Below, one piece after another: positions 10,045 through 49,790 of a DNA stretch of 64,000 nt. The stretch covers positions 402,493,933-402,557,932 of the forward strand of contig NC_058131.1 of assembly GCF_016433145.1 (NCBI RefSeq). Reading direction: 5' to 3'. The DNA is from Gracilinanus agilis. Taxonomy: Eukaryota. Made by a program: the position numbers and the translations under genes. How positions within the stretch are numbered: the stretch's first letter is position 1; the number at the start of each line of letters is the position of its first letter. Under the pieces are notes generated by a model. That model was given only the letters and a program-made list of their open reading frames with translations, was not told the origin of the DNA and searched no databases.

Positions 10045-11471
10045 ATGGTAAATGTCCTGTTTCTCATCTTACTGTCCAAAGCTGAGTCCTAATCCTTTTC
10101 ACTATTGATTTGGGGCCAACAACCTAGGTGGAGGTGTAGTGTAGGGCAGGATAACTGGGGGAGGCGGGGAGGAAGGTCAGGCAGAAGGATGGGATGAGAG
10201 GAAAGAGTAAGTGAAAGCAGGTTTAGGTTCTGAGGTCCAACCCGGTCCTAGTATTCCAGCCATTCGCACTTCTCTGGCTCCCCTGTTTCCCCAGCAGTGG
10301 GACCAACCATGAGATAAATCCCTGATATCATCCCCAGGAGCCCTGGCAGAGGTGGCCACTGCTGTTGCTGCTAGCTCCCCTGCTGTTGCTTCCCTCGTCT
10401 GCCTCAGCCTCCTGTGAGCTGGACGAAGAGGGCAATAATTGCTACTGCAACTTTTCCGCTCCGAACCCTGAATGGGATAGAATTGCGATGTGCATTTCCT
10501 CGGTACAGGCGGATATCGATGGGGGCGGCCACAACTTGGACATCTTTTTGCAGAAAGTAATTGCTGACCCGAGCAAAATCTCGGACATACTGAGATCGCT
10601 GCGCCTAAAACGGCTGAGGCTAAGGGGTGCCCAGGTCCCGGCCCCACTTCTGCATCAGCTCCTGAAGGCATTGACCTACACGCGGATTGAAGAGCTGTCC
10701 CTAGTAGATCTGGTGATTTCGATGCCGCCCCTGCTACCTCCGTCATTCAGTGACAATGACCTCAGGCTGAAAGCCCTGCACCTCCACAGAGTGCTGTGGA
10801 CCGGAGAGGGCAACTTACTGGCGACAGTGGGGCCTTGGCTAAAACCTGGACTGAAGGCACTGAGCTTGACTGGTTTAAACCTGAGCTATGTGCCCTGCCC
10901 AGAGTTGGACGCCTTTGGGGAACTGAACTCTCTAGATCTGTCGGACAATCCAGAGATAACAGAGAATGGCTTAACTTCGGCGCTTTGCTTCTCGAAGCTC
11001 CAGGCACTGAAGGATCTGGCACTTCGGAACACCGGCCTCCAGTCCTTGGGGAGAGTGTGCCGGGCTCTGGAGGCGACGGAGACCAATGTGCAGCGACTGG
11101 ACATCAGTTACAACGAGCTGGGAGGGAAACCCTGGCCTCAGTGTACCTGGCCACCCTCCTTGCTCTCGCTCAACCTGTCCCACGCGAATCTGAAGTGTGT
11201 GCCGAAGCCTCTGCCCAAGAAGTTGCAGCAGCTGGACCTAAGCTACAACCTGCTGAGGAAGCAGCCTCAGTTGCCCCAGGTAACCGACTTGATCCTTGAA
11301 GGGAACCCTTTTGCCTACGCCGGTGCCTCAGCCAGACTGCAAAGGGAGCAGCCGACAGAGGACTGCGCAGTTCTTTCTCGCGGGAGCAAGTTCGCAGGCG
11401 CCACGCTAGCCTTCCTGGTCTCTGGGACAGCAGCCTTGGCGCTGCTGCGCTGGACCAGAGAATTCGCCTGA
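10045..11471 (+). CDS. CD14: Monocyte differentiation antigen CD14 (378 aa; exons 10045-10047, 10338-11471)
   Basis: ATG-only first coding exon (AGCCATG|GTAAAT), acceptor CCCCAG|GAG in frame (MEPWQRWPLLLLL...), CELDEE..CYCNFS N-cap, LRRs (LDLSDNP, LDISYN, LNLSHANL, LDLSYNLL) and a hydrophobic GPI-signal-like C-terminus. Same gene architecture as eutherian CD14. Confidence 0.97.
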
Positions 11472-12316: not shown

Positions 12317-15300
12317 ATGACAAGTAGTGAGCAGGTAAGGAGAAACTTGCCCTCTGGACCTCCCTGGCTGCTTGGGCTCAGGGCCTAGGCCTCATTATCT
12401 TCTCCTGCTTCAGGCTGAGGCTGCAACAGTGACAGCAATGATAGAAGTGGCATCCATACCAGAGACAGGTGAGGAATTCCACCCAAGAGCAGTTCTGGAG
12501 GGGACCCTGAAGTCAGGTTTCCTGTGTCCTGGACAGGAGAACACAGTAGAAGCCCACAGTCCTGAGTAACCCACCACTCTATTACAGATCATGAAACCTA
12601 CAGCCCCCGATTCCTTATAGAGGGTCCTAGAATGCTCTTGCTAGATCCAGGAGACCCTGAGACTCTGGTACTGTTGGGGTGGGGAAAGATGGGGCAAGGC
12701 ATGAGGAGGATGGAGGAAAATGAGGGTATAAACAGGAATTGACCTTACTGACTTTAGTCTTGCACTTAGGAGCACCAATTCACATTTGACTGAGCCTTAG
12801 GCCCAGAGCATGCCCAGGTAGAATAAGGGGGTAGGTGGGGAGGGTGGTTGACAAGTCTGTGTCTCCTTCTGTCTCATTCTATTTCTCCCCCTTGTATCAT
12901 ACTGTATACTGTCCTAGAGACAACTCTTTTGGTACCTTCCCAAGTTGGAGCATGTTGCTTAGAAGGCATGTGGCAGGGAGGAAAGGGAGGACTGTGATGT
13001 CCCAGACTGAAAGTCTTGGGGTCCGATGGAGTAGGGAGCTAATGTTCCCAGAGAGGTGAGCTCTTCTATATCAATACAGAAAACAGAACAGAAGTTCCTG
13101 GAGAGCATTCGGGCTGTGCTGGGCTCAGTATCCAGAGGTTATAGTGTGTCTGTGCTGATTAGGGGCAGAGAAGCCAAGCAGCCAGATCTGGTTCCTCAGG
13201 TGACGAGCTGGAATTCACTTTGCCCTACCTACCATACAGTGTGTGTGTGGATGGGGGGGGGGGCCGAGGGGTGGTGTCAGAGGGACTTTTCTCCTCATCC
13301 TCATTCCACCCCTACCCTCTCTAATATTAATTTCTAGCTCCTGGCAATGCTGTTTGAGGAGATTCAACCTGCAGAATCTGCCTTTCAACCCTCCCTCAGG
13401 ACCCTAAGTCTAGTGCAGGTGACAAATCTTGAAAGGGATTTGCAGGGACTGGGCAGCCCTGGAGAGTGCTTTTCAGGATTTGGAAGCTTTTGATAGGTTC
13501 CACACAAACATATCCCATGCACTTCCCACGACTTCTCATTGCTTTTAGCTCAGTTCTAGTGGGAAGGGTCAAGACTTATTATCTGGAGCAGGGGACCTGA
13601 GCTTGCTGGAGGTGTACCCACTGGGTCTGTGAGTATGCAATTTTTTTTTCTTTATTCCAGTGACAAATTTACACATAAGTTTTCCAAGGTTACATGATTC
13701 ATGGAATTGACAAACAATTCCACTGGGTTATTCATGTATTCTCACTCAAAACCCATTTCCATATTATTCATTTTTATAAGATCAAAACTCTAAATCATAT
13801 ACCCAAACAAACAAGTGATAACTCATATGCTTTCTTCTGCATTTCTACTGTAAGTATGCTACTTTGCCCAGGATAACGAATATTTTCTTCTAGCACTTCC
13901 TCACTTCCCTATTCCACCCCAAGCACCATTCCCACAAAAGCCAGACTGGAGGGCCCTGTTCTGGAGTCCAGTAGCTTGTAATTTTCTGGGAGAAGAGGAA
14001 GCAGAAAAAGCACTATCTTCCCTCATGGACCTTTGATCTCTCAGAGAGCCAGCTGCCCTCTTCAGGGTTTGTCTGTCTATAGACTAGGGTTACCTGCTCA
14101 TTATGTTTTTATGCCTGGGATTCAAGGCTTTTGAAGATCCTGTGGCAGAGGTCCATATTTCAAGATCTTTTCAAGCCTAGGTTTCCACTTTTTTCCCAGG
14201 GTAGTGGAAGGAGCTAGTGAAGCAGAGGTCCTTGACTCCAAATCTGGCTGCCAACTTTACCTCAAGGCAATGGAGGGCTTGGACAGGTATGTGAGTCTGT
14301 GATCCCTGGTAGAAAGAATGAGGGAAGGAGAAAGAAACTCAGAGGGCAACCTAAGGAACCCTGCCCAGAGTTATAACCATCTTCATCCCCAGGGCCTGCT
14401 CCCTTCTTACTGTGACATTTTCCTGCCTGGAGCCCAGCACCATCAAGAGGCCCTGGGTCAGAAGCCTGTGTCGAGGCTCACTGAGAGTCCTGCAGCTCCC
14501 AGAAGCTCCGTGAGTCTAGCTTGGGGTGGGATCCAGGGCAGCAGTTTGAGGGTCCTATAAAATAAGGGGTGGTTAGTTCCCCATACCCAGCAAAAGAACA
14601 CAATGAGCAGGGTACCCTAGTCATACAGACAAAGAAACCCTGAAGAGGGGAGCTGTGCAGAAGACAGTTCCCATAACAAAGACCTGCATTGTGCCTGGCC
14701 TTAGCTCTCACTCCTTGTAGGGACTGCCCTTTATTGCTAGCACTGGCAGGGAAAACCTCCAAGGCCCATGTGGGCTCATTGCTTTGGACTGTGACTCAGT
14801 TACTCTTCGGGAATAGTTACAGTAGCCTGCTGCTCTACTTGGATCCCCGAGGTATGAGGTTGGGGAGGGAGGGAAGGGAAAAGAAGAAGTGAAGGGAGAA
14901 TTAATTCTTTTGGGGGAGGGTCCCTAGAAAGCTCTGCTCCCCAAGCTTCCAAATACCAAGGTTCTCAAAGAAGCTTCTTATCCAGGCTTCTCACTGAAAA
15001 GTGGGTGTTCCATACCCAGTTCCAGTTCAGTGGGAAGGAGGAGCCCCATGTGACTCTTAGCAGGAGAAGTTGGGAGGGGTGGACAAAATTGTTCTTTGAC
15101 TACACCAAAAGTCCATCCCACTCCTCATGAATTGGTCCCATTGCCTGCCTGTTCTCCCTGGCAGTCACCCCTTTGGGGCTGCTCCTGGCCTCACTATCAG
15201 GGGCTAAAAGAGCCCAGGACCCAGCTCAGTCAAAGCAGGTTTCTCCCATACTGTGGGATGCTTCAGAAGAAATTCAGGCTCGGCGTGCAGCTGTTCAGGC

Positions 15301-18300
15301 CCTGCGCTCTGGGCTTTCTGGAGCCACTCTGCAGGAGAGTCAGCTTACCCAGCTAAGCCTGGTGCTCAGGGAATTGAAGGTGAGACAGAACTGGTTCTGG
15401 TACCTGGGTACTATCCTCCCACCTAGGGCAAAAGAGGCTCTGGAAACTATTGACTGAACTTGCTATCTGCAGGTATTGAAAAACCAAAGCCGGTACTGTG
15501 AGACTATGATGCTCAAGGGACCTGGAGCCTCTGCACCTGGGCTTCCAAACATGCAGGTATGTGGGTGCCCAATTCCCTAGACCAGTGATGGCAAACCTTT
15601 TAGAACATTTTAGGGACCTGTACCCCACCCTGCCTGTGTTTGGAGGCAGGGCAGGACTCCATCTGTGTGTGTGTGTGTGTGTGTTGCTGCACATGCCCAT
15701 AGAGAGGTCTCTGCATGCCATTTTTGACACATGTGCCATAGGTTCACCATCATGACCCTAGACCTTGAGATTAGCATTTTGTCACCACCCATAGAAGATG
15801 GCTCTGGGGCTAATTTTAAAGCATCCTTTCTCAGTATATTTGATTTCAAATTTGCACTTAGGGTGCAAAAAGGGACATTTTGTTATAACTTTATATAATT
15901 GGCCTATTTTAAGGTGAGGCTCCTTGGTGTAGTGGATAGAGTACTGGACTAGCAGTCTAGAACATCTGGGTTTAAATCCTACCTCTTAAAATTACCAGTT
16001 GGGCTATGATGCTTAAGACACTTAACATCTCTGAGCCTCTGACAAATCTGTGTCAGTTATAGGCAGGTTGAGGTCTATCTCCATTGTATACTTTAAATAG
16101 AAGAAAATTCTGTTTTCCACAACAAGAGGTACTTTTATGATGAAAAGTCCTCTGTGTTGAATCAGATGTTGGGGCAGCTAGGTGACTCAGTGGATTGAGA
16201 GCCAGGAGGTCCTAAGTTCAAATCTGACCTCAAATACTTCCTAGCTCTGTGACTTTGAGCAAGTCACTTAACCCCCATTGCCTAGCCTGGTGATGGCAAA
16301 TCTATTACACGTGACACGTGTAGCCATTTTTGATGACACACGGCTGCGTACAGAGAAGTATGGGGCCGCATGCCAAGGATGAAACATTTGCTATAGTGTA
16401 GTATAGACACTCTGTGCACTATAGATGAAAATTCTACCTATATTAATTTATCTATTTTGGTTTATTAAATACAGTTATATATCATAATTATAAATTTTTG
16501 TTATTTAAACTATAAATATCACAAAATTATTGTATTTTTCTCGAAGTGACACACCACCTGAGTTATGCTTGGTTTTTTAGCAAATTTTGACATACCAAGC
16601 TCAAAAGGTTGCCCATCACTGGCCTACCCCTTATCATTCTTTTGTCTTGGAAACAATACACAGTATTAATTCTAAAAAAGAAAGTTTAGGAAAAAAACAA
16701 CAAAAACCAGTGAATTGGAGGTCAAAGGCTCCAGTGAACAGTAATAATTTTGAAACCTTTGAGAGGAAAGGAAGAGAATGAGCAGAAGTACAAATACCTT
16801 GCTAAAGCTTTCCTATTTCTCCATCTTCCTAGAGAGATATCTCCCTTATATGTTCCTTTCTGGGTTTATAAGTTGGCCTCTTCTAGCCCTGCTGGTACCT
16901 CAAATAGTATCTCTTACATATAGAGTGATGACAGAGGAGAGACAGACCTCAGACTCAATCCCAATTCCTATTTATTAATTTAAAACCCTTACCTTCTGTC
17001 TTAGAATTGATACTAAGTATTGGTTCCAAGGCAGAAGAGCTGGAATTAAGTGACTTGCCCAATGTCACACAATTAAGAAGTTTCTGAGATCATATTTGAA
17101 CCCAGGACCTCCAGTCTTTAAGCTTGGCTCTCTATCCACTGACCCACCTATTTGCCCCTCTTCCTATTTATTTTGATACCTTGTTAATCCTGGTACCTAT
17201 TTAGCTTGAAAGAAGGAAAATATGTATTCTAAGTACCCTTACAATCTGGCATCTGATCTCACAATATTACTCTTTGCTTTTTAAATTTAAGTAAATTTTT
17301 TCAAGTAACAAAAATCCACCTTCTCTCCCTTCTCACCTGCTTCCTATCCCCACAGGAAAAAAAAAAGAAAGAAAGAAAACAAAACCCTCATAATAAATTG
17401 GCATAGTTGAGCAAAACAAATTCCTGTATTGGCCAAGCCTAAAAAACCTGTTGCAATTTGGGCTCTTTCTCTCACCAGGAAGTGGGCAGCTCTATTGCAT
17501 CATGAGTGTTTGAATCAGGCCAAGCCATCTCCTTTGTTGATCAGCATTCTTAAAACATTCAAAGATGTTTGTCTTTATAATATTGTTGTCATAAGAATCT
17601 TTTCAAGGTTACTGATTACATTTTAATGATATCTATAGTTGCTTAAAAATAACATAAAAGAATGAAATTAAAACCCAACCTTTCAAGGAGGAGGCTTTGT
17701 TGTATTATAACATTTCTCTCTAGGTGCTAGAATCAAAGGAGACCTTTTCTCCCATTTTCCAGAAGCACCCCCAAGGTGAGTTCAGGCCCTGTGGCCCAGA
17801 CACTATCTTCTTGGAGTTCCTCTTAGTTTGTCTATCTTCCCCCAGAATAAAAATATTTCTCTTTGGCCGCATGCACTTCAGAAACTCTGGGCCTGGGGAA
17901 GAAGTTTCTCCTATCAGCAGCACCAAGAAACTACCCTCTTGAGGGCTCCAAGAAAAAGGTAAAGCTTCACCCATTCCTATAGAGAGTACGTGGGGATTTC
18001 CCAGGGAACAGTTTTCTGTGGGTAAAATTAGGTTAAAATGAACACTATTGGAAATATGAAAGAAGGAAAGGAGTCACAAAAGGGCAGGTTGAATTATAGA
18101 AAATTTCTGAGAGGGAAAGCCCCACTGTTTTATCTTGGTGATAATGGTGACAATCAGGTATGATTTATGCTTTTCTTGTATTTTAGGGTTTTAGATTTGG
18201 AAAGGACCTTAGAGATCATCTAGTTCAATCTCATTATTCTCATAGATGAGGAAATTAAGGATAGTAGAGAGTAAGTTATTTCCTTGAGAGTTCATAGATA

Positions 18301-20182
18301 ATAAGTAGCAGAGCAGACATTTAAATTCAGGACCTCTGGGACAGCTAGGTAGGGCAGTGGATAGAGAGCCATACCTGGAGTGGGGAGGACCTGGGTTCAA
18401 ATCTAGCCTCAGATACTTCCTGCTGTGTAACCCTGAGCAAGTCACTTAACACCAATTATCTAGCTCTTCTATCTTGAAACTAAAACTTGTATCAATTCTA
18501 AGAGAGAAAGTAAGAGTTAAAAAAAATAATTGATACTAAGAAGGATTTTAAAAAAATTTAGGTCCTCTGACTCCAAATCCAATGATCTGATCATGATCCC
18601 TTTTTTTAGAAAGAGTCGGTAGAGTTACTTCCTATCTCTCTTAGACTTAGCTGATTTTACTGCTCAGGAATTCACTGCCAGTAGTGCTGAAACCTCTAAC
18701 TTTGAGGTGGGGGCAATGGGAATTGGGAGCTTTGTTTGAGGCAAAACCAATGGCCTCGGTGGGGAAAGTAGGCCTTATTTCTAAGGCAGCAGTTTTTTAA
18801 AATTAAATTTAAATTTAAATTAATTTATTTTAACAATTTTTAAAAGTTCCAAATTCTCTTCTCACCCCTTCTCCACCCATTTGAGAAGGCAAAAAATATG
18901 AAACCCATTTTACATGTGAAGTCATGCAAAACATATTTCTATATTAGTAAGGCAAGAGTTATTAAATGTTTGTTGTCATGGACCCATTTGGTAATCTAGT
19001 AAAACTTAATACCACTATGGCTTGTTGCCTATCACTGAAGGAAATGCTGGATTTCAGATAACAGTAAATGAAAATAAATATCTAATTTCTTTCCCCATCC
19101 AAGTTCAATAGATTCATAAAATCTAATGGGACTCCAGGTTAATAACCCTTGCCTCTAAGGGAGAGGAAAATGGAACTTGGCCCAATGGAAAAAAAAAACA
19201 AAACAGAATGTATGTAAGTCCTCCTTGTTGGTGTCTATTCTCTTAGCCCCCTGACGTAGCACTGCAGTTTATGTTAGCACGGGCCCATAGGCAGCTGCTC
19301 CAGGAGCATCACCGATCCCAGGTCCAAGAGGAACTGAGCTGCTTGAGGCAAGACAAGAAAATAGCAACAGATCAGGTTAGTCCCAGATATCTAGGGGGGA
19401 AAAATAAAAGAGACCAAGACTAGTGCTGAAGCTAAAGAGTAGGCTTCTTCTGTCTCAGCAAATACCGATGTTCATTAGGCCCCAGACCTATCTGCTGAGA
19501 ATCTGAGCTGGAGGCAGGATCATGAAGCACTGGCCTTACAAGTGGAGGCTCTGAGATTGGAGCGAGATGCAGCTGAACAGGACCTAGAGGCCCTGTACAA
19601 GCTGTATGTCCAAGGAGCCCGGACACAGACTTGCCACATCTTGCAGGTCAGTAGTAAACAAAGAATGGTGGCAGAGGAATGATGAAGCTCCAGCTTAATA
19701 ACTCAAGTTAGTGGCAGATGGCCACTCAAGACCCAGCTAAAGAAATAGATGTCTGAATTCCTCTAACCAACAATCCATTAAAAGCACAGGTGTTCCAGGC
19801 TTGTCAGGGGCTGTGGAAGGAGCGGGCTACTGCCAGAGAGTTACATCATCGAATCCTGTTGGCTGGAGTCTTACAGGATGCCATCTCTCTGGCCACACAG
19901 AACCAACAGCTCCAAGTCCAGAATGAGCAGCTCAAGAAGGGTGAGGATTATGAGAAGGAGAAGTGTAGGAAAGAAGTGGGGTTCAAATGACAATAGAAAT
20001 AGGGACTGTTTCACTAATCTCAACCCATGAGTATATCCCAGGGCTTTGTCCTGAAGTACAAGGGATTACTATTAGGAGAGATGAGATTGGGGTCTGGCAA
20101 CCTTGGTCCTCCAACAGGCCTTCAGTGATTCTGTGTTCCATGTCTCCCAACAGAAATCACAGAGAGGAGGGAAAAAGTTTAA
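12317..20182 (+). CDS. Uncharacterised 18-exon gene: degenerate kinesin-motor-like domain plus coiled coils (574 codons including stop; one in-frame TGA at 12791-12793, so possibly a recent pseudogene)
   Basis: Exons 12317-12334, 12414-12468, 12588-12667, 12770-12817, 13080-13199, 13338-13418, 13549-13628, 14200-14286, 14393-14509, 14721-14851, 15165-15379, 15473-15556, 17724-17775, 17882-17958, 19247-19375, 19479-19646, 19790-19940, 20154-20182. All 17 introns are GT-AG with matching phases (1722 nt total). Kinesin-like blocks occur in canonical order: HQFTFD*ALGPE, FLESIRAVLGSVSRGYSVSVLIRG, QDLL, VVEGASEAEV, SLLTVTFS, TQLLFGNSYSSLLLYLDP. Confidence 0.8.
13643..13860 (-). mobile_element. LINE-1 3' end fragment
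   Basis: T-rich start followed by ...CAATTCCACTGGGTT..., the same marsupial L1 3' UTR motif as in 3490-3620. Confidence 0.75.
15583..15755. mobile_element. hAT/Charlie MITE (OposCharlie1-like termini)
   Basis: Left TIR CAGTGATGGCAAACCT, right ...CATAGGTTCACCATCATG, 8-bp TSD CCCTAGAC on both sides. Confidence 0.85.
16171..16700 (+). mobile_element. SINE interrupted by a hAT MITE (MITE 16288-16621)
   Basis: SINE head at 16171-16287 and tail resuming at about 16630. MITE termini TGGTGATGGCAAATCT and AGGTTGCCCATCACTG, TSD GCCTAGCC/GCCTACCC. Confidence 0.8.
16978..17159 (-). mobile_element. Opossum-type SINE
   Basis: Reverse-complement consensus AAACCCTTACCTTCTGTCTTAGAAT...CCACCTATTTGCCCC. Confidence 0.85.
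18190..18590. mobile_element. MIR/CORE-SINE (-) with a nested opossum SINE (+, about 18338-18520)
   Basis: CORE motif GATGAGGAAATTAAGG...; nested GGGACAGCTAGGTAGGGCAGTGG head. Confidence 0.65.
18952..19150. mobile_element. Ancient hAT-Charlie (Charlie4-like) non-autonomous element; related copies at about 32265-32450 and 41712-41930
   Basis: Shared motif TGTCATGGACCC..TTGG(C/T)A..CT(A/G)GT(G/A)AA..C in all three copies, with GTTA(T/A)TAAC-type termini. Family name is from memory. Confidence 0.55.
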
Positions 20183-21974
20183 GCTCTGGCAGTCTGCCCA
20201 AACACATTTTCCTCAAAGTAAAGGCATTCCAATCCAGGTCTGCCTTGGCTAACAGACATGGCCCCACAGTCATACCTGTACTGCAAGAGTCAAATCAAAA
20301 GCAAGCTTTTAGTAGCCACAGCAAGAATCTTTCTTATTTAGTGGTACCTAGCCTAAATTCGGTCCTACTTCTGGAGAGTATTTACTGCCACCTAGCTGGA
20401 AAGCTGTGCTTTTTTATTTCCAACTCCCTAGAATTTGGAGGAAAATGTGTAATATTACAGAACCTTGGAATATAGAGAGGCCCAGTCAGCTGGCACTTGC
20501 TCTGTCCTGGCAAACTCCCTTCTTTGTATTCCTAATCTTGATTATTCAATTTTAGCATCTATTGAGAGGAAAACTGCCCACTCCTGCTACATACACCTTG
20601 CCCCTATTGATTGTAACCTTTCCCCTACACAATCGCTTTCTTCTTCTTCACTGTCTTTCCATTGTGCCTCTGGAAATCCTCAAGTATTATTAACAAACAT
20701 CTCCTCTTCCTAGATCTCTCCAGTTTATTATTTTTTCCTTTTTATGGGTGCACTAAAACTTGACTCTCCAGACACTACATCCCTGGTGGCTGACACTTCT
20801 CCCTCTGGCCTACTAACTAAAGACCACCCTGTGCTAAGAGAAATAGTTCTCATATTGCTTGATTTTCACTGCCACTTTCAGATCCTCTGGCAGCCAATGC
20901 CATACAACCACTTCTATATAACTGCGCAGATCCTTGTGGTTGCCTCTGGGTCCCTCATCCTCCTTTCACAAGGAATGCAGTGTCTGGTTCATGGTTTTTC
21001 CTCTGTACCTCAGTTTGGGGTTTAGATTTAGATGTATAAGTGACTTCAGAAACTATCTAATGAGGGTATGAAAGAAAAGAATGCTGACTGGAGTTGGAAG
21101 ACCTTCTGCCTCTGATGCTTGCTATCTGAGTGACCATGGGCAAACCAGTGATCTGTTTCTTCATCTGTTGGAATAAGATCCCATGACCTTGGTCCAACTT
21201 CTCTATTTAGAGTAAAGATGAGGAAAATAGAGCTTAAGCACATTAAGTGATTTGTCTCAGGTCACACAAGATAGTAAATATCAGACCCCAAATAAGAACC
21301 CAAGTCCTCTTGACTCTAGAACACTCTCTTTTTACTGACACATGACCATCTTTATCCTTGAGATGCATCTTCAAACACTCTGGCTTCCATTACATATTTT
21401 TAAAAATTTCCTTACTGATACATTTTGTCTGGACAAATTAATAATTTCCCAGTAAATAACTTTCCTATAGTATCTTTTTAAAAATGTTTGTTGGTTACAT
21501 TAAAATTCCCAGGTATCTCTGCTCACCTCCCCCACTTCCCACACCACAGAATGCATCACCCAGCTCCAAAAATGTGTGTATAAATATGTCTTTTGTGTTT
21601 CCAATTATTGGTTTTTTTCCCTGGATGTGACATTCAAAAATTATCCTTCAAATATTAAATCTATAGTTGTATATAATGTTCTCTCGGTTCTACTGGTTTC
21701 TCTCTTCATAATTTCATGTTGGTCTTTCCAGATTAAAAAAAATTAACCTGTTCATCATTTCTTATGGTGCAGTAGTATTTCATCACAATCATATATCATC
21801 GCCTATCTTGCCATAAAAAGTTTAATCAAAACCTTCTAATTGTGACTGACAGAGCATACAACTTTCTACTCTTAAAATTTCTCTTTTCTTAATAGAAAGG
21901 AAGCATTTTAACCACAGACCACAGCCTGTGGTTTCAACAGTTCGGCCACAGAGATCATCATGTCTTAGATCTTT

Positions 21975-22157
21975 TTTTTTTTAAATCATTACCTTCTGTT
22001 TTAGAATCCATACCTTGAAAAGGCTCCAAGGTAAGAGTCAGGCAATGAGGTTAAGTAACTTGCCCAGGGTCACACAGTTAGGAAGTGTCTGAGGCCAGGT
22101 TTTGAACCTAGGACCCCCCTAGACTTGGCTCTCAATCCACTGAGCCACCTAGCAGCC
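21975..22157 (-). mobile_element. Opossum-type SINE
   Basis: Reverse-complement consensus with a poly-T head. Confidence 0.85.
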
Positions 22158-23631
22158 TTTTCATGCTTTAGATCTTAATCTCACCCATATTTGGGTCCCC
22201 TCCAAGATCTTCAACCACTATATCCTCTAATAATAACCTCCTGTCTTATCTCTCCCTCTGTTGGATTCTTCCTAAACCTATTTTTTATATTCACTTTGAT
22301 CTACAAATCCTACCCCAAGTCTGTTCTACTCTAGTCTCACTTTTCTCCCTTCCCAGGTTGAATGGTAGTTGACCAGTCTAGCCAAATCTTGTTCGCTACC
22401 CAAAATCCTTTGCTCCCTTGACCTAGGTCCATTCAGGCCTGTTAATATCTTCTATCCTGAGATCACCTCATTATCTGCAGCCCACTGGGTCCACATTCAT
22501 GGTATCTAAACTAGCTTTGTCATTTCATTTTTTTACTTTTTTGTAATCCTTTTACTCTTCCTGGAGTGTCTCTATGTCCCTCTCAGAGTTAATGCAAATT
22601 TCATCTTTCTTCAAGTCTCTTATTTCTCTCTCAGCAGGACTTCAATTCTTTTCTAACTGAAGAAAAAAAGCAAAAATCCAACCAATCAAACAAGAACCTC
22701 TCATCTTTCTTATTCCAAGCTTCCTCCCGTTTTTGAATAATAACAGCTCATATGTATAACAGCTCTAAAGGTTTACAAAGTGCTTTACACACATTTTTTC
22801 ATTTTATACTTAACAATCCTGTGAGGTCAGTGCTACTATTATCCTTTTTATAGATGAAGAAAGTGAGTCGGAGAGAAAGTAAGTAACTTAGCTATAGTCA
22901 GACACCTAGTGAATGTCTTCTCTCCTTGCACCATGCATGAGACAGCCTACCTTTGGGCCAACGAGTATCTCTAGAATAGCTAGGTAGAGGCTGCTAGGGG
23001 ACAAAGGACAGAGCACTGAGTTTTGAGTCAGGAAGATCTGGGTTCAAATTTGACCTTCCATAATTCTTGTGACACTGGGAAAGTCACTTAAACCTATCTG
23101 CCTCAGTTTCCTCAACTGTAAAGTGAGGAGAGTAACAGTACAACATAGGTTATTGTGAAGATTAAATGAGATATTGGTAAAGTACTTAGCACAGTGCATG
23201 AGGCATAGCAGTTCTTGTTCCCTATCCCACCTTACCCCAATACAGATGTTTGATTTACATATCTAGCCCTCATTTTTCTTCTGAGCCCAAGTCCCATACC
23301 TGACAGGCATTTCCATCTAGTTTGAACCAGAGGAATCTCAGAATCAACATGGCTAAAACTGAACTTATTTATCTTTTCCTAATATCTGGTGAGAGCATTG
23401 CCCTTCAAGTCCCAGGTATACAATCTCAGCCACAATTAACTCTTCACTCTCTCTCTCCTCCATATTAATCACTCTCTGGCCAATTCTTTCACTGTCTTGC
23501 CTCTGGTCCCTTTCTCTATTCTCACTTGGTCATCAGCTTAGTTCAGGCCTTATCACCTTACTATTGCAGTAGCTTCTTAATTAGACCACTTGTCTCCAGT
23601 GTCCTCTCATCCTTCCTTTAAACAGCAGTCA

Positions 23632-23636
<5 letters not shown>

Positions 23637-23663
<27 letters not shown>

Positions 23664-23975
23664 ATCTCTTTGGGATACAGTTCTAGTTGAGGTATTTCTG
23701 GGATATGCAGTTTTATAGCCCTTTGGGTATAGTTTCAAATTGTTCTCCAGAATGGTTGGATTAGTTCACAATCCCACCTATATACATCAGTCTCAATTTC
23801 CCACATCCCCTCCAAAATTGATCATTTTCCTTTTCAGTCATATTAGCCATACTGATAGGTATGAGGTAGTACCCTCAGTTGTCTTAATTTGGATTTCTCT
23901 AATCAATAGTGATTTAGAACAACTTTTCATAGGACGATAGATACCTTTGATTTCTTCATCTGAAAACTGCCTTTT
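23637..23975 (-). mobile_element. (CA)n microsatellite followed by a LINE-1 ORF2 fragment
   Basis: (CA) run at about 23637-23662, then TTGTTCTCCAGAATGGTTGGATTAGTTCACAA, the reverse complement of the L1 ORF2 CWW region. Confidence 0.75.
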
Positions 23976-23997
23976 ATCACCAAACTGAAATATATAT

Positions 23998-24412
23998 ATT
24001 TTAAACCCTTACCTTCCATCTTAAAATCAATATCGTATTTAAGTTCCAAAGCAAAAGAGCAGTAGGACTAGACAATGGGGGTTAAGGGACTTGCCCAGAG
24101 TCACACAGCTGGGAAGTGTCTGAGGCCATATTTGAACTCAGGACCTCCCATTCCTAGGTCTGGCTCTCAATCCACTGAGTCACCCAGCTGTCCCCACTAA
24201 ACTGATACTTTTTTTTTTTAAACCCTTACTTTATGTCTTAGAGTCAATACTGTGTATTGTTTCCAAGGTAGAAGAGTGGTAAGGGTAGGCAATGGGGGTC
24301 AAGTGACTTGCTCAGGGTCACACAACTTGGAAGTGTCTGAGGTCAGATTTGAACCTAGGACCTCCTGTCTCTAGGCCTGGCTCTCAATCCACTGAGCTAC
24401 CCAGCTGCCCCC
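23998..24412 (-). mobile_element. Two tandem opossum-type SINEs
   Basis: Copies at about 23998-24196 and 24208-24412, both reverse complement of the consensus. Confidence 0.85.
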
Positions 24413-28883: not shown

Positions 28884-31215
28884 CTAGTCAGGTCCCTTAC
28901 GCAGGGCCCGGAGATAATCCTTCAAGGTCTTCTCGACATTGGGTACTGCATAGGACTGTGCTGCATAGATGCCGGTGCATGCACCAATTGCGAAACCCAT
29001 CACCGCTGATGCCCTCAACTTGGCTACGACATAGCCGGCCAGGAAGCCCTTGAGAAAAGGAGATGACAGGAACGATCCTTCCTGCAAGAAAGCCAGTCAG
29101 ATAGCATTGAAAACATGGAGTAAAACTCAAATTGGGATACATGCCTTAGCAACAAGCCTGAGAAAGGCCCTCTTTCCCTCTTCTGTCAGGAGCTTTCTAA
29201 GTAGAGCCTAGTCCCAAACTACCCCTGAATTCCAGGTATAGAAACTGAAGTATACAGAGATATTTTCTCAAGTTTGTTTGGCTGGAAAACCTAGAAAGAA
29301 TCCTAGCCAACCCCCACCAGTCTAATCATTTAAGCCTCTGCCATTTAGTAATTTAACCTCATGTCACCATCGACTTTCTATAACTTATGTGGCTCCTGCC
29401 TATATTCCACTACAAAACTGTAGCAAACATAATTAGTATATAGGATGTGGCCACCAAAGGGAGGGAGAATGTGACTTAGAAATGAACCAAACATCAGAGA
29501 TATTAAGCCCACTACTAAGTGACATTAGGTGGGGACTATTTGGGTATATTTATGCCTTTATGCCAACTTTGCCAATTACCTGTTCCACACCTGTCTTGAC
29601 CTCCTCTTCTAGTCGTCGTTGTAGATGTTCCAGCTGATTTTTTAGGAAAGCCAGGTCTTTCACCTTTGGCATCGAGTCCTATGGCAGGGGAGAAGCTTTC
29701 TACTTACAGTCTGACCAAGTCAACTGAACCCTGTCCCCCCATCCTCCCTTCAATGGCTGTCTAGGATCAAGAGGAAACAGGAAGAACCAAAGAAATAGTA
29801 AATCATGATTTTCCTAATATATTCCATTTGCTTTCTAAGGCAAGGTGTATTCCACTTTCTGGGTCACTCTTTCACTGTCCTCACCTTGGTCTAACATTGT
29901 CAGTTCCAAAGATTATTACTGGGAAAAAGGGATGTCCCAAAGGCAGGAGCCTCAAACCATTATCCACAAGGGATTCCCTTTTGAAATAGTATATACAATT
30001 TTATTTTCCATACAAATTACTCAATATTTCAGCCTTTCCATAGATAGATGAAAAACTGGACTTAGTATATAGGTCAAATTGAGAATTCTTTCTTGACTAA
30101 ATTCTTTGGCTCTAAACTTGATATTTTTTCTTTCCAGCATTAAGAGCAAATATTGTCATTGAGTACTATCTTAAGGAGAGTGAGACTTAGTAGCATAGGG
30201 GATTTAACATTCCTTGGGACAATAGGCTCTAGGGGATTTGGATCAGATGAAAGCTATCCCTGGTCTGGGTAAATCTGTTCCCCTAAAGCCAAATATTTCC
30301 CAGAATAGTTTAAACTGAGCTTGAAGCTAAGGAGGACATGATGGGAAGCTGAGTTGGCTCCCCTGGGAGTCTAAAAACCCTCTAACAATTACATCCCAAA
30401 GTGAAATAATGGGTTACTTCAGAATACCAGTGAGTACATACCCTCTCCCCCATCACTAGACATGTCTTCAGGACTGGAAGCATTTATTTACTTGCCAAAG
30501 ATGTAAAAGGGATTTCTGCTCATGAATGAGATGGACTAAATTGTTCTACCAACTCTTGAGTCTCCAAAAGTTTTCCTAGGGTTGATGGTACACGGTTTCC
30601 CCATGCCATTGCATCAAACATTTAAGGGTCCATTTTGTTTAAAACATCATAAGCCATGATACTGACAAGAGGATTGGAAGAAGAAACACTTATTTCCTCG
30701 GTAAAGAGTACTCGGCAACTCACTACCATTTCAGGCAGAAGTTTTAACCTGGGCCATGGAACAGGGTACCTGAGACAGCTGGAATGGGGGTCACAAATTA
30801 TTTTCATGCAGGAGAACACTGGCGGGAGATCAGAGAAACTAGGCTGACACATTAAACCCGACCGGCCATTTCTCCTCATTCAAATCCTTCTGAAAAGGCA
30901 GAATGCCTAAAGAAGTGTTCTTAAATATCAGATAATTTAGCCTCTCCCTTTACAGACTAGGAAACCAAAGCCCAGAGAGAGGAAGTGATTACCCTAAGGC
31001 CACACAGCAAGTTTAAATGTCAGCGCTAGAATCAGAAGTTAGGTGTCCTGGACGCCTAGCTTACATCTCTTTCTACGGGGCTGAGTTTATAAAGTTGAGA
31101 CAACTGGCTCGAAACCTCAGATAGTCTTTCTGGGGGTTGGGATTTGGGGGAGAAAGAATATCTCGCCTCCCTTCTGCCCCACGCTTGCATGGACACTCAC
31201 CTTGTCATCCGCCAT
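28884..31215 (-). CDS. SLC35A4 upstream-ORF microprotein (103 aa; exons 31215-31201, 29678-29580, 29081-28884)
   Basis: Spliced translation MADDK|DSMPKVKDLAFLKNQLEHLQRRLEEEVKTGVEQ|EGSFLSSPFLKGFLAGYVVAKLRASAVMGFAIGACTGIYAAQSYAVPNVEKTLKDYLRALRKGPD*. Canonical donors (GTGAGT, GTAATT) and acceptors; matches the human SLC35A4 uORF peptide as I recall it. Confidence 0.93.
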
Positions 31216-48461: not shown

Positions 48462-49790
48462 AACATCTTGTTCAGTGGTATGTTTTGGTGGGGCACTTGT
48501 TACTTTTTACCCTCCAAACCAATTCACATCTGGCCATCTAGGAGTACAGGGCTTACCCATAAAGGTTCTCAGTATCTTTGTAATCTTAACTTGTTTCTTT
48601 TCTGTCTTACAGATATAGTTTAACATTAACTTGTGCTGGGTTGGATATGACAAAGTCCTTGCCCTGTAGGAATTTTCAAATGACAGGATCAAAAGGACCT
48701 AAAGATGCATAGCTGAGCCTAACCGCCATGTTTTTTAGTTTGGCTTCAAAGAGAGAAAGAACAGAAGCACAAATAAGTGAGCAGCTTGTCTTTTTCCTAG
48801 GACTGTGGCATGGAGAGAATAGTGGGTGCCCCCCCCCCTCCCAGGATAGCTGAATTTATCTGAAATGGGCTACTCATAGCCAGGGCTGGTCCAGGCGGCT
48901 TTAAGGAGGTCGGGAAGTTCATCGCTACAGGATTCCTATAGATTTTAGCATGGGGAGATATCGAGATATTGGTTTCCTGCATTCCTGGGCAGTGATTGTG
49001 GGTTCCAGTGCTACATTTTCTCTGGCTGTCTGAAAGCATAAATGTAAAAGAAAACTAAAGGGGTTTTGTTCTGGCTAAGCAGCAGAAGTCATGCTGGACA
49101 AAGTGAGAAATCAGGGCAGCTGGGGAACACTGGGTACCCAGAGTAGAAGAAAGGCTCAATATCAAATGTCAGGTATAGGGAAAGAATCCAGAAAGATGCC
49201 TTCCTGGTTGCTGAGCAGAGAGAAAAGTCCTGCCTTGGGATTCAGAAATTTCAAGTTGGAATCCCCAACTCTGCTATTTACTGAATATATGAGTTTGGGT
49301 GAATAACTTCCCTTCTGGAGGTCTCAGTTCTCTCATCTGTAGAATTTGGAATTGATGTATGATTCCTCTAAGATTTCTTCCATTGCTAACTTGCTAAGAT
49401 AGTGATTCTGAAGGGAGAAGGGGAGCCTCAAATGATCTCTTCCTGGGGAATGATGTCCCATGTTAAAATAACAGGTAGGGATTAGAGCAGAGTTACAGTG
49501 GAGGCCCAGATCCTGGAAGTCTGTTTCCTGGAACAGGGGACAACCCTTGGTTGGAGCCAAACTGTTGTTGTTTACAATAACAGCTCTTGCTGGTCCTTGC
49601 TCCCCGCCCTAGGCTGGATCTGATTGTAGCTGGAACAAGGCCCAGTCTTTGAAGCAGAGTCCTGTGGGACAGGAATTCCTCATTCTAGCTTCAGGATGAC
49701 CAGGGTTGGGTAAAGCAATGCCTTCCCCACCTCAGAACCTCATGTGTGAGGTAGAGAGAATAGAAATGTAACCCTAGAGAAGTCGTAAAT

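Follow-up and report, generated by a model that had tools for sequence, protein, structure and literature searches.

Exon 4 of a kinesin-derived gene carries an in-frame stop codon

The 64,000-nucleotide stretch of the Gracilinanus agilis genome analyzed here (the window; RefSeq assembly GCF_016433145.1, contig NC_058131.1, positions 402,493,933 to 402,557,932 of the forward strand) contains a kinesin-derived gene of 18 exons with a single in-frame TGA in its fourth exon. The reading that we favor, tentatively and at somewhat less than an even chance, is that a genuine mutation produced the TGA in a cassette exon which was freed from constraint in didelphids and which may now act as a poison exon.

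The gene was modeled from local tblastn alignments of two proteins, P0026 of Monodelphis and P0018 of Sminthopsis, after which the exon borders were refined. The resulting model comprises 1722 nt of coding sequence, all 17 introns begin with GT and end with AG (34 intact splice dinucleotides), and each of the 18 exons aligned in order to P0026, P0001, or P0018 (Table 1). The joined frame contains only two stops, the TGA at codon 59 and the terminal TAA at codon 574 (20180-20182), and the first in-frame ATG past the TGA lies at 13347-13349 (codon 111, exon 6). A first-pass annotation of the same DNA had described the TGA as the sole coding lesion in 1722 nt, in agreement with the rebuilt model, which has no other internal stop and no frameshift.

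Exon 4 occupies 48 nt at 12770-12817 on the + strand (GAG CAC CAA TTC ACA TTT GAC TGA GCC TTA GGC CCA GAG CAT GCC CAG) and translates as EHQFTFD*ALGPEHAQ. It is preceded by an AG acceptor (cacttAG) ending at 12769 and followed, right after the CAG, by the donor GTagaa; there are no N bases in the window. When the coordinates were reread, the letters were the same as in the first-pass annotation, with the TGA at 12791-12793, and the claim made there that the segment is a true exon of a kinesin-like gene was borne out by its alignment to the marsupial exon E-H-R-F-T-F-D-R-V-L-G-P-E-H-A-Q. Exons 1 to 3 sum to 153 nt, and exon 4 therefore enters and exits in phase 0, so that, as had been stated, skipping it would preserve the frame. 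By an approximate consensus position weight matrix (PWM), which gives rough scores, the splice sites of exon 4 were weak (acceptor, 0.5 bits; donor, 0.6 bits), and its combined score was among the lowest in the gene. An internal acceptor AG at 12799-12800 was considered as a rescue and rejected, since it would leave only 17 nt of the exon and break the frame.

Origin of the stop codon

In the 55 orthologs that bear exon 4, the column occupied by the TGA was Arg in 52 and Gln in 3, all of the latter from Monodelphis. In an alignment of 37 orthologs, D58 and V60 were invariant and F57, R59, and L61 nearly so. A single CpG transition in CGA yields TGA if it strikes one strand and a Gln codon, CAA, if it strikes the other, and no CpG remains in exon 4 of the window. 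The column thus identifies Arg as the ancestral residue and supports a CpG transition from CGA to TGA, as originally suggested, as the simplest probable origin of the stop. Such a stop is ordinary by itself, CGA to TGA being the commonest kind of nonsense mutation.

The same column bears on the idea that the TGA is recoded, either as selenocysteine or by read-through, so that a full-length protein is made. The otherwise intact frame would fit such recoding, and nothing else was found that would. The orthologs have Arg or Gln at this position and never a TGA-encoded residue, and the TGA is followed by G, which is not known to make a leaky context. A scan of 16300-24000, a stretch that takes in the last exons and 3.8 kb beyond the terminal stop, revealed no selenocysteine insertion sequence (SECIS) or other Rfam element at E values up to 1, the sole match being a sub-threshold SCARNA7. 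The absence of a SECIS element from this region, together with the lack of conservation of the TGA, makes recoding very unlikely, and we give it almost no weight.

Exon 4 has diverged in two didelphid genera

The comparison with Monodelphis was made at the protein level, with the Monodelphis residues read from proteins. Identity between the two species was 84-100% per exon, with exon 4 as the outlier at 11/16 (69%). With seven Australidelphian proteins as the outgroup, the exon 4 peptide was found to be invariant at all 16 columns in the four species with models that have it, Sminthopsis, koala, bilby, and Dromiciops (the last covering the first 14 of the 16 only), and outside exon 4 the outgroup was invariant at 316 of 545 columns. 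At outgroup-invariant columns, the window and Monodelphis differed at 5 of 16 positions in exon 4 versus 13 of 314 elsewhere (Fisher p=0.0008); when all columns were counted, the figures were 5 of 16 versus 46 of 540 (p=0.011). The exon 4 changes on the window branch were R>Q, R>stop, and V>A, and those on the Monodelphis branch were H>R, R>P, F>L, and R>Q, leaving the motif as TFD*AL in the window versus TLDQVL in Monodelphis. Judged from this alignment, codon 3 of the exon is evidently a second former Arg codon that was altered in both didelphids. The divergence of this exon in Monodelphis too suggests that relaxation at the level of the exon predates the stop.

These additional changes also bear on the accuracy of the base itself. 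An assembly or base-calling error, or a somatic or heterozygous artifact in an animal that is truly CGA, would require only one base to be wrong in a gene that is otherwise undamaged, and sequencing run X1, the sole run containing the stretch, has 0.91 of its sampled words. One wrong base would not explain either the Val-to-Ala change in the neighboring codon or the complementary CpG change in the other Arg codon of exon 4. Moreover, no genuine mutation is commoner in mammals than C to T at CpG, and modern assemblies contain fewer single-base substitution errors than indels, both of which count against an error. We consider this explanation improbable.

Across the whole protein, lineage-unique residue changes numbered 13 in the window and 17 in Monodelphis (p=0.58), indicating that drift in the gene outside exon 4 has been brief or absent. 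The signs of a unitary pseudogene were not seen, since there was one stop, no frameshift, no lost splice site, and no lineage acceleration. It is possible, if rather doubtful, that a single exon is dying in a living gene, its decay having occurred independently in the two didelphid genera with the other 17 exons remaining constrained.

Many ortholog models lack exon 4

The use of exon 4 in other mammals was assessed in 98 ortholog models with a recognizable exon 5. Exons 3, 4, and 5 were all present in 40 of these, exon 3 was joined to exon 5 in 28 (about 25 of them cleanly), and the remaining 30 had other N termini. The models lacking exon 4 included tammar P0025, brushtail possum P0028, and the killer whale fragment P0134; the sugar glider model was also without it but begins only late in exon 3. 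Models of both kinds were present within cats and within mustelids, suggesting a choice of isoform or model rather than lineage-specific loss. A search of transcript open reading frames (ORFs) with Monodelphis residues 1-200 returned two eutherian entries only and none from a didelphid. The commonness of models joining exon 3 to exon 5, the divergence of exon 4, and the lack of acceleration elsewhere together put exon skipping in the lead, beyond the side remark that it had received in the first-pass annotation.

We propose that a C-to-T change at a CpG turned the ancestral CGA (Arg) into TGA within a weak-sited, phase 0-0 exon. Transcripts that include exon 4 would reach the stop at codon 59, ahead of 14 exon junctions, and would be expected to undergo nonsense-mediated decay. 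Those in which exon 3 is joined to exon 5 would keep the frame and encode a predicted protein of 557 residues, 16 fewer than the form with exon 4. Exon 4 combines the two features of a poison cassette exon, in that its skipping is frame-neutral and it bears a premature stop. In poison exons coupled to nonsense-mediated decay, such as those in the genes for serine/arginine-rich (SR) proteins, inclusion creates a decay target and skipping yields protein, and exon 4 would behave alike. The classic examples are conserved and serve regulation. Unlike those of the SR type, exon 4 looks formerly coding, its stop appears to have been acquired only just now, and its use as a poison exon is a prediction.

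Several points weigh against a skipped and relaxed exon 4. The exon was picked for its stop, which makes the divergence test partly post hoc, and seven other 16-residue segments, all in coiled-coil exons, also reach 5 differences. Mutation bias also contributes to the exon 4 excess, given that four of the seven changes lie in two Arg codons that carried a CpG. The exon is still open in Monodelphis despite four changes, and TFDRVL is the best-conserved motif of the family, so that its loss should matter. The models without exon 4 are computer predictions, and we infer from the sequence that the base is called correctly, that this species skips exon 4, and that the shorter protein would be a working product.

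The conservation of TFDRVL, with Arg in 52 of 52 nondidelphid sequences, would also fit a recent loss of the whole gene, in which exon 4 is needed and the TGA is a null allele, fixed or segregating, so recent that no other damage has built up. A stop at codon 59 of 574, with the next in-frame ATG at codon 111, would trigger nonsense-mediated decay, and the 13 versus 17 lineage-unique changes are what would be expected for a very young lesion. The family is perhaps dispensable in some lineages: no catarrhine primate was present among the 120 best family matches, which did include lemurs, mouse lemur, and squirrel monkey, and a dN/dS (nonsynonymous to synonymous substitution rate ratio) above 1 has been reported for the family in hares (PMC6065068). 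Old World monkeys and apes may lack the gene, or it may be without annotation there. Against loss of the gene stand the divergence of exon 4 in Monodelphis as well, the commonness of in-frame models without exon 4 in other mammals, the intact state of the 34 splice dinucleotides and of the remaining frame, and a public annotation that still has a product of 529 residues. On balance, we regard recent loss as unlikely, though it has a real share of the probability. If the TGA were a fresh null, the species would be a natural knockout.

If instead exon 4 is a dying, poison-like exon, as we favor, the protein would function without needing the TFDRVL strand of its former motor core, and the opossum would be a naturally occurring deletion mutant. 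Should the stop be real and the skipped product functional, the mammalian models without exon 4 would represent a real isoform.

The public annotation of the locus may start at exon 4

The annotation of GCA_016433145.1 places a protein-coding gene on the + strand of the window, with a product of 529 residues and a coding sequence ending at window position 19990. The relevant coordinates are 17376-19990 (+). The length equals the 16 codons of exon 4 plus the 513 codons of exons 5 to 16 and of exon 17 read through its donor, a match that is arithmetic only. This suggests that the product is a 5'-partial model running from exon 4 across the position of the stop. No ATG-started path of one or two exons, contributing 48 nt and leading into exon 5, had usable splice sites that would explain the 529 residues.

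A kinesin relative without the motifs for handling ATP

A profile of 37 orthologs was compared with the PDB, and all 10 of the 10 matches were kinesin motors, the best being KIFC3 (5wde, E=9e-4). In the profile alignment, exon 4 falls on KIFC3 SFELDKVFSPQASQ (S-F-E-L-D-K-V-F-S-P-Q-A-S-Q), just before the helix leading to the P-loop, and the P-loop stretch itself is deleted in the family. By this alignment, exon 4 is predicted to encode the strand-like T-F-D-R-V-L motif ahead of the kinesin-like domain's first long helix. A six-frame search for motifs found no P-loop of the form G-x4-G-K-[ST] in the gene, and a six-frame scan of 12317-20182 found no match to the switch I motif SSRSH or the switch II motif DLAGSE; the one occurrence of SSRSH in the window, at 49078, is outside the gene. 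Against PF00225, the best orthologs scored 19.6 and 19.0 bits, below the gathering cutoff of 29.3, and the single exons and open frames of the kinesin-like part gave no match in Pfam or the PDB. The matches being weak but exclusively to kinesins, the gene is taken to be a kinesin relative, and no catalytic criterion places it in the motor family.

AlphaFold models at full length and for the N-terminal domain (73 sequences) had mean pLDDT (predicted local distance difference test) scores of 49.5 and 41.6, too low to confirm a fold, and a Foldseek search of these poor models against the PDB gave nothing at E<=0.001. In the second, low-confidence model, residues 51-57 form a strand that is followed by a helix, in kinesin-like order, an arrangement to which we attach no evidential weight.

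KIF26A and KIF26B are nucleotide-binding-deficient kinesins, and the present gene would share with them a kinesin-derived domain that no longer hydrolyzes ATP. Unlike the gene, the KIF26 proteins have a recognizable motor domain above the family thresholds and are far larger. The modest interest of the stop lies in the gene that carries it, which is conserved in therians and kinesin derived, has lost all the ATP-handling motifs, and has no known function.

The gene belongs to a therian family next to CD14

A search of a representative library with exon 16 (19479-19646 +, 56 aa) gave 17 matches, the top one being a 605-aa protein with 91% identity. A word search with one full-length match then gave about 130 therian proteins, all labeled "uncharacterized." Members were found in Monodelphis, Sminthopsis, koala, Dromiciops, bilby, tammar, sugar glider, and brushtail possum, and the Mus spicilegus member P0071 is labeled "Riken cDNA E230025N22 gene." By these sequence matches, the family is conserved across marsupials and placentals, and the gene in the window is identified as the didelphid ortholog of Monodelphis LOC100026344 (P0026) and mouse E230025N22Rik, with which it shares the CD14-adjacent position and the exon-by-exon layout. 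The P-loop region is lost alike in the family, which has RGREAKQPD instead. The window copy differs from the family in having TGA for Arg and in an exon 14 that begins 3-4 codons later. None of the members has a known function, and the literature that names the mouse gene consists of expression lists or selection scans. A single paper on a "pseudokinesin" was found, and it concerns a fungal orphan group unrelated to the gene.

Table 1. Positions of the gene, its exons, and neighboring features in the window
Feature	Position	Strand	Basis or remark
Full coding span, kinesin-derived gene	12317-20182	+	tblastn with P0026, P0018; 1722 nt
Exon 1, coding part, ATG, MTSSEQ	12317-12334	+	6/6 identical to Monodelphis
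Exon 2, 55 nt	12414-12468	+	17/18 identical to Monodelphis
Exon 3, 80 nt, phase-0 end, weak donor CTG/gtactg	12588-12667	+	Model, PWM
Additional AG, 12 nt upstream of exon 4 acceptor AG	12756-12757	+	Within poor pyrimidine tract; sequence reading
CAA (Gln), exon 4 codon 3	12776-12778	+	Column Arg in Australidelphia, Pro in Monodelphis
In-frame TGA	12791-12793	+	Codon 59 of gene, codon 8 of exon 4
GCC (Ala), exon 4 codon 9	12794-12796	+	Val invariant there in 37-ortholog alignment (V60 of P0018)
Exon 5, 120 nt, GREAKQPD at kinesin P-loop place	13080-13199	+	39/40 identical to Monodelphis
Exon 6, 81 nt	13338-13418	+	Gene model
Exon 7, 80 nt	13549-13628	+	tblastn and model
Exon 8, 87 nt	14200-14286	+	tblastn and model
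Exon 9, 117 nt	14393-14509	+	tblastn and model
Exon 10, 131 nt	14721-14851	+	tblastn and model
Exon 11, 215 nt	15165-15379	+	tblastn and model
Exon 12, 84 nt	15473-15556	+	tblastn and border refinement
Exon 13, 52 nt	17724-17775	+	tblastn and border refinement
Exon 14, 77 nt	17882-17958	+	tblastn and border refinement
Exon 15, 129 nt, coiled-coil part	19247-19375	+	tblastn and model
Exon 16, 168 nt, query that retrieved orthologs	19479-19646	+	Library search, model
Exon 17, 151 nt	19790-19940	+	tblastn and model
Exon 18, TAA at 20180-20182	20154-20182	+	Model
CD14-like leucine-rich repeat (LRR) ORF	10326-11468	+	849 nt ahead of the ATG of the gene
SLC35A4 ORF, single exon, 320 aa	27379-28338	-	Gene sits between CD14 and SLC35A4

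Exon borders, alternative C termini, and neighboring genes

At the start of exon 14, Monodelphis has ACTSET and Sminthopsis GTSET, and the window lacks an AG there (17862-17882). It must consequently use the AG at 17880-17881, giving a product that is 3-4 codons shorter and in frame. In the Monodelphis RefSeq model P0026, translation continues into intron 13 (GEFRPC...); read likewise, the window runs into a stop (KLPS*; 17776-17996), which leaves the spliced form joining exon 13 to exon 14 as the only open one.

Two acceptor AGs lie 5 nt apart before exon 17 (19783-19789; aaaAGcacAG/GTG). Use of the upstream one would give frameshifted C termini (HRCSRLVRGCGR...), as in the old Monodelphis model P0001 and the koala model P0021. 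In addition, two alternative C termini are both open in the window (19941-19990 and 20154-20182). The Sminthopsis, Dromiciops, and sugar glider models end via exon 18 (ITERREKV), and the Monodelphis, koala, tammar, and possum models end by reading through the exon 17 donor (GEDYEKEKCRKEVGFK, frame end at 19990).

In Monodelphis, tammar, and sugar glider, as in the window, the gene lies just downstream of a same-strand LRR protein, of 369-419 residues in those species. The eutherian model P0013, a read-through prediction of 651 residues, fuses CD14 with this gene, indicating that the two are adjacent in placentals too. Upstream of the SLC35A4 ORF (about 28884-31215, - strand), an annotated 103-residue DUF4535 product corresponds to the SLC35A4 upstream-ORF microprotein.

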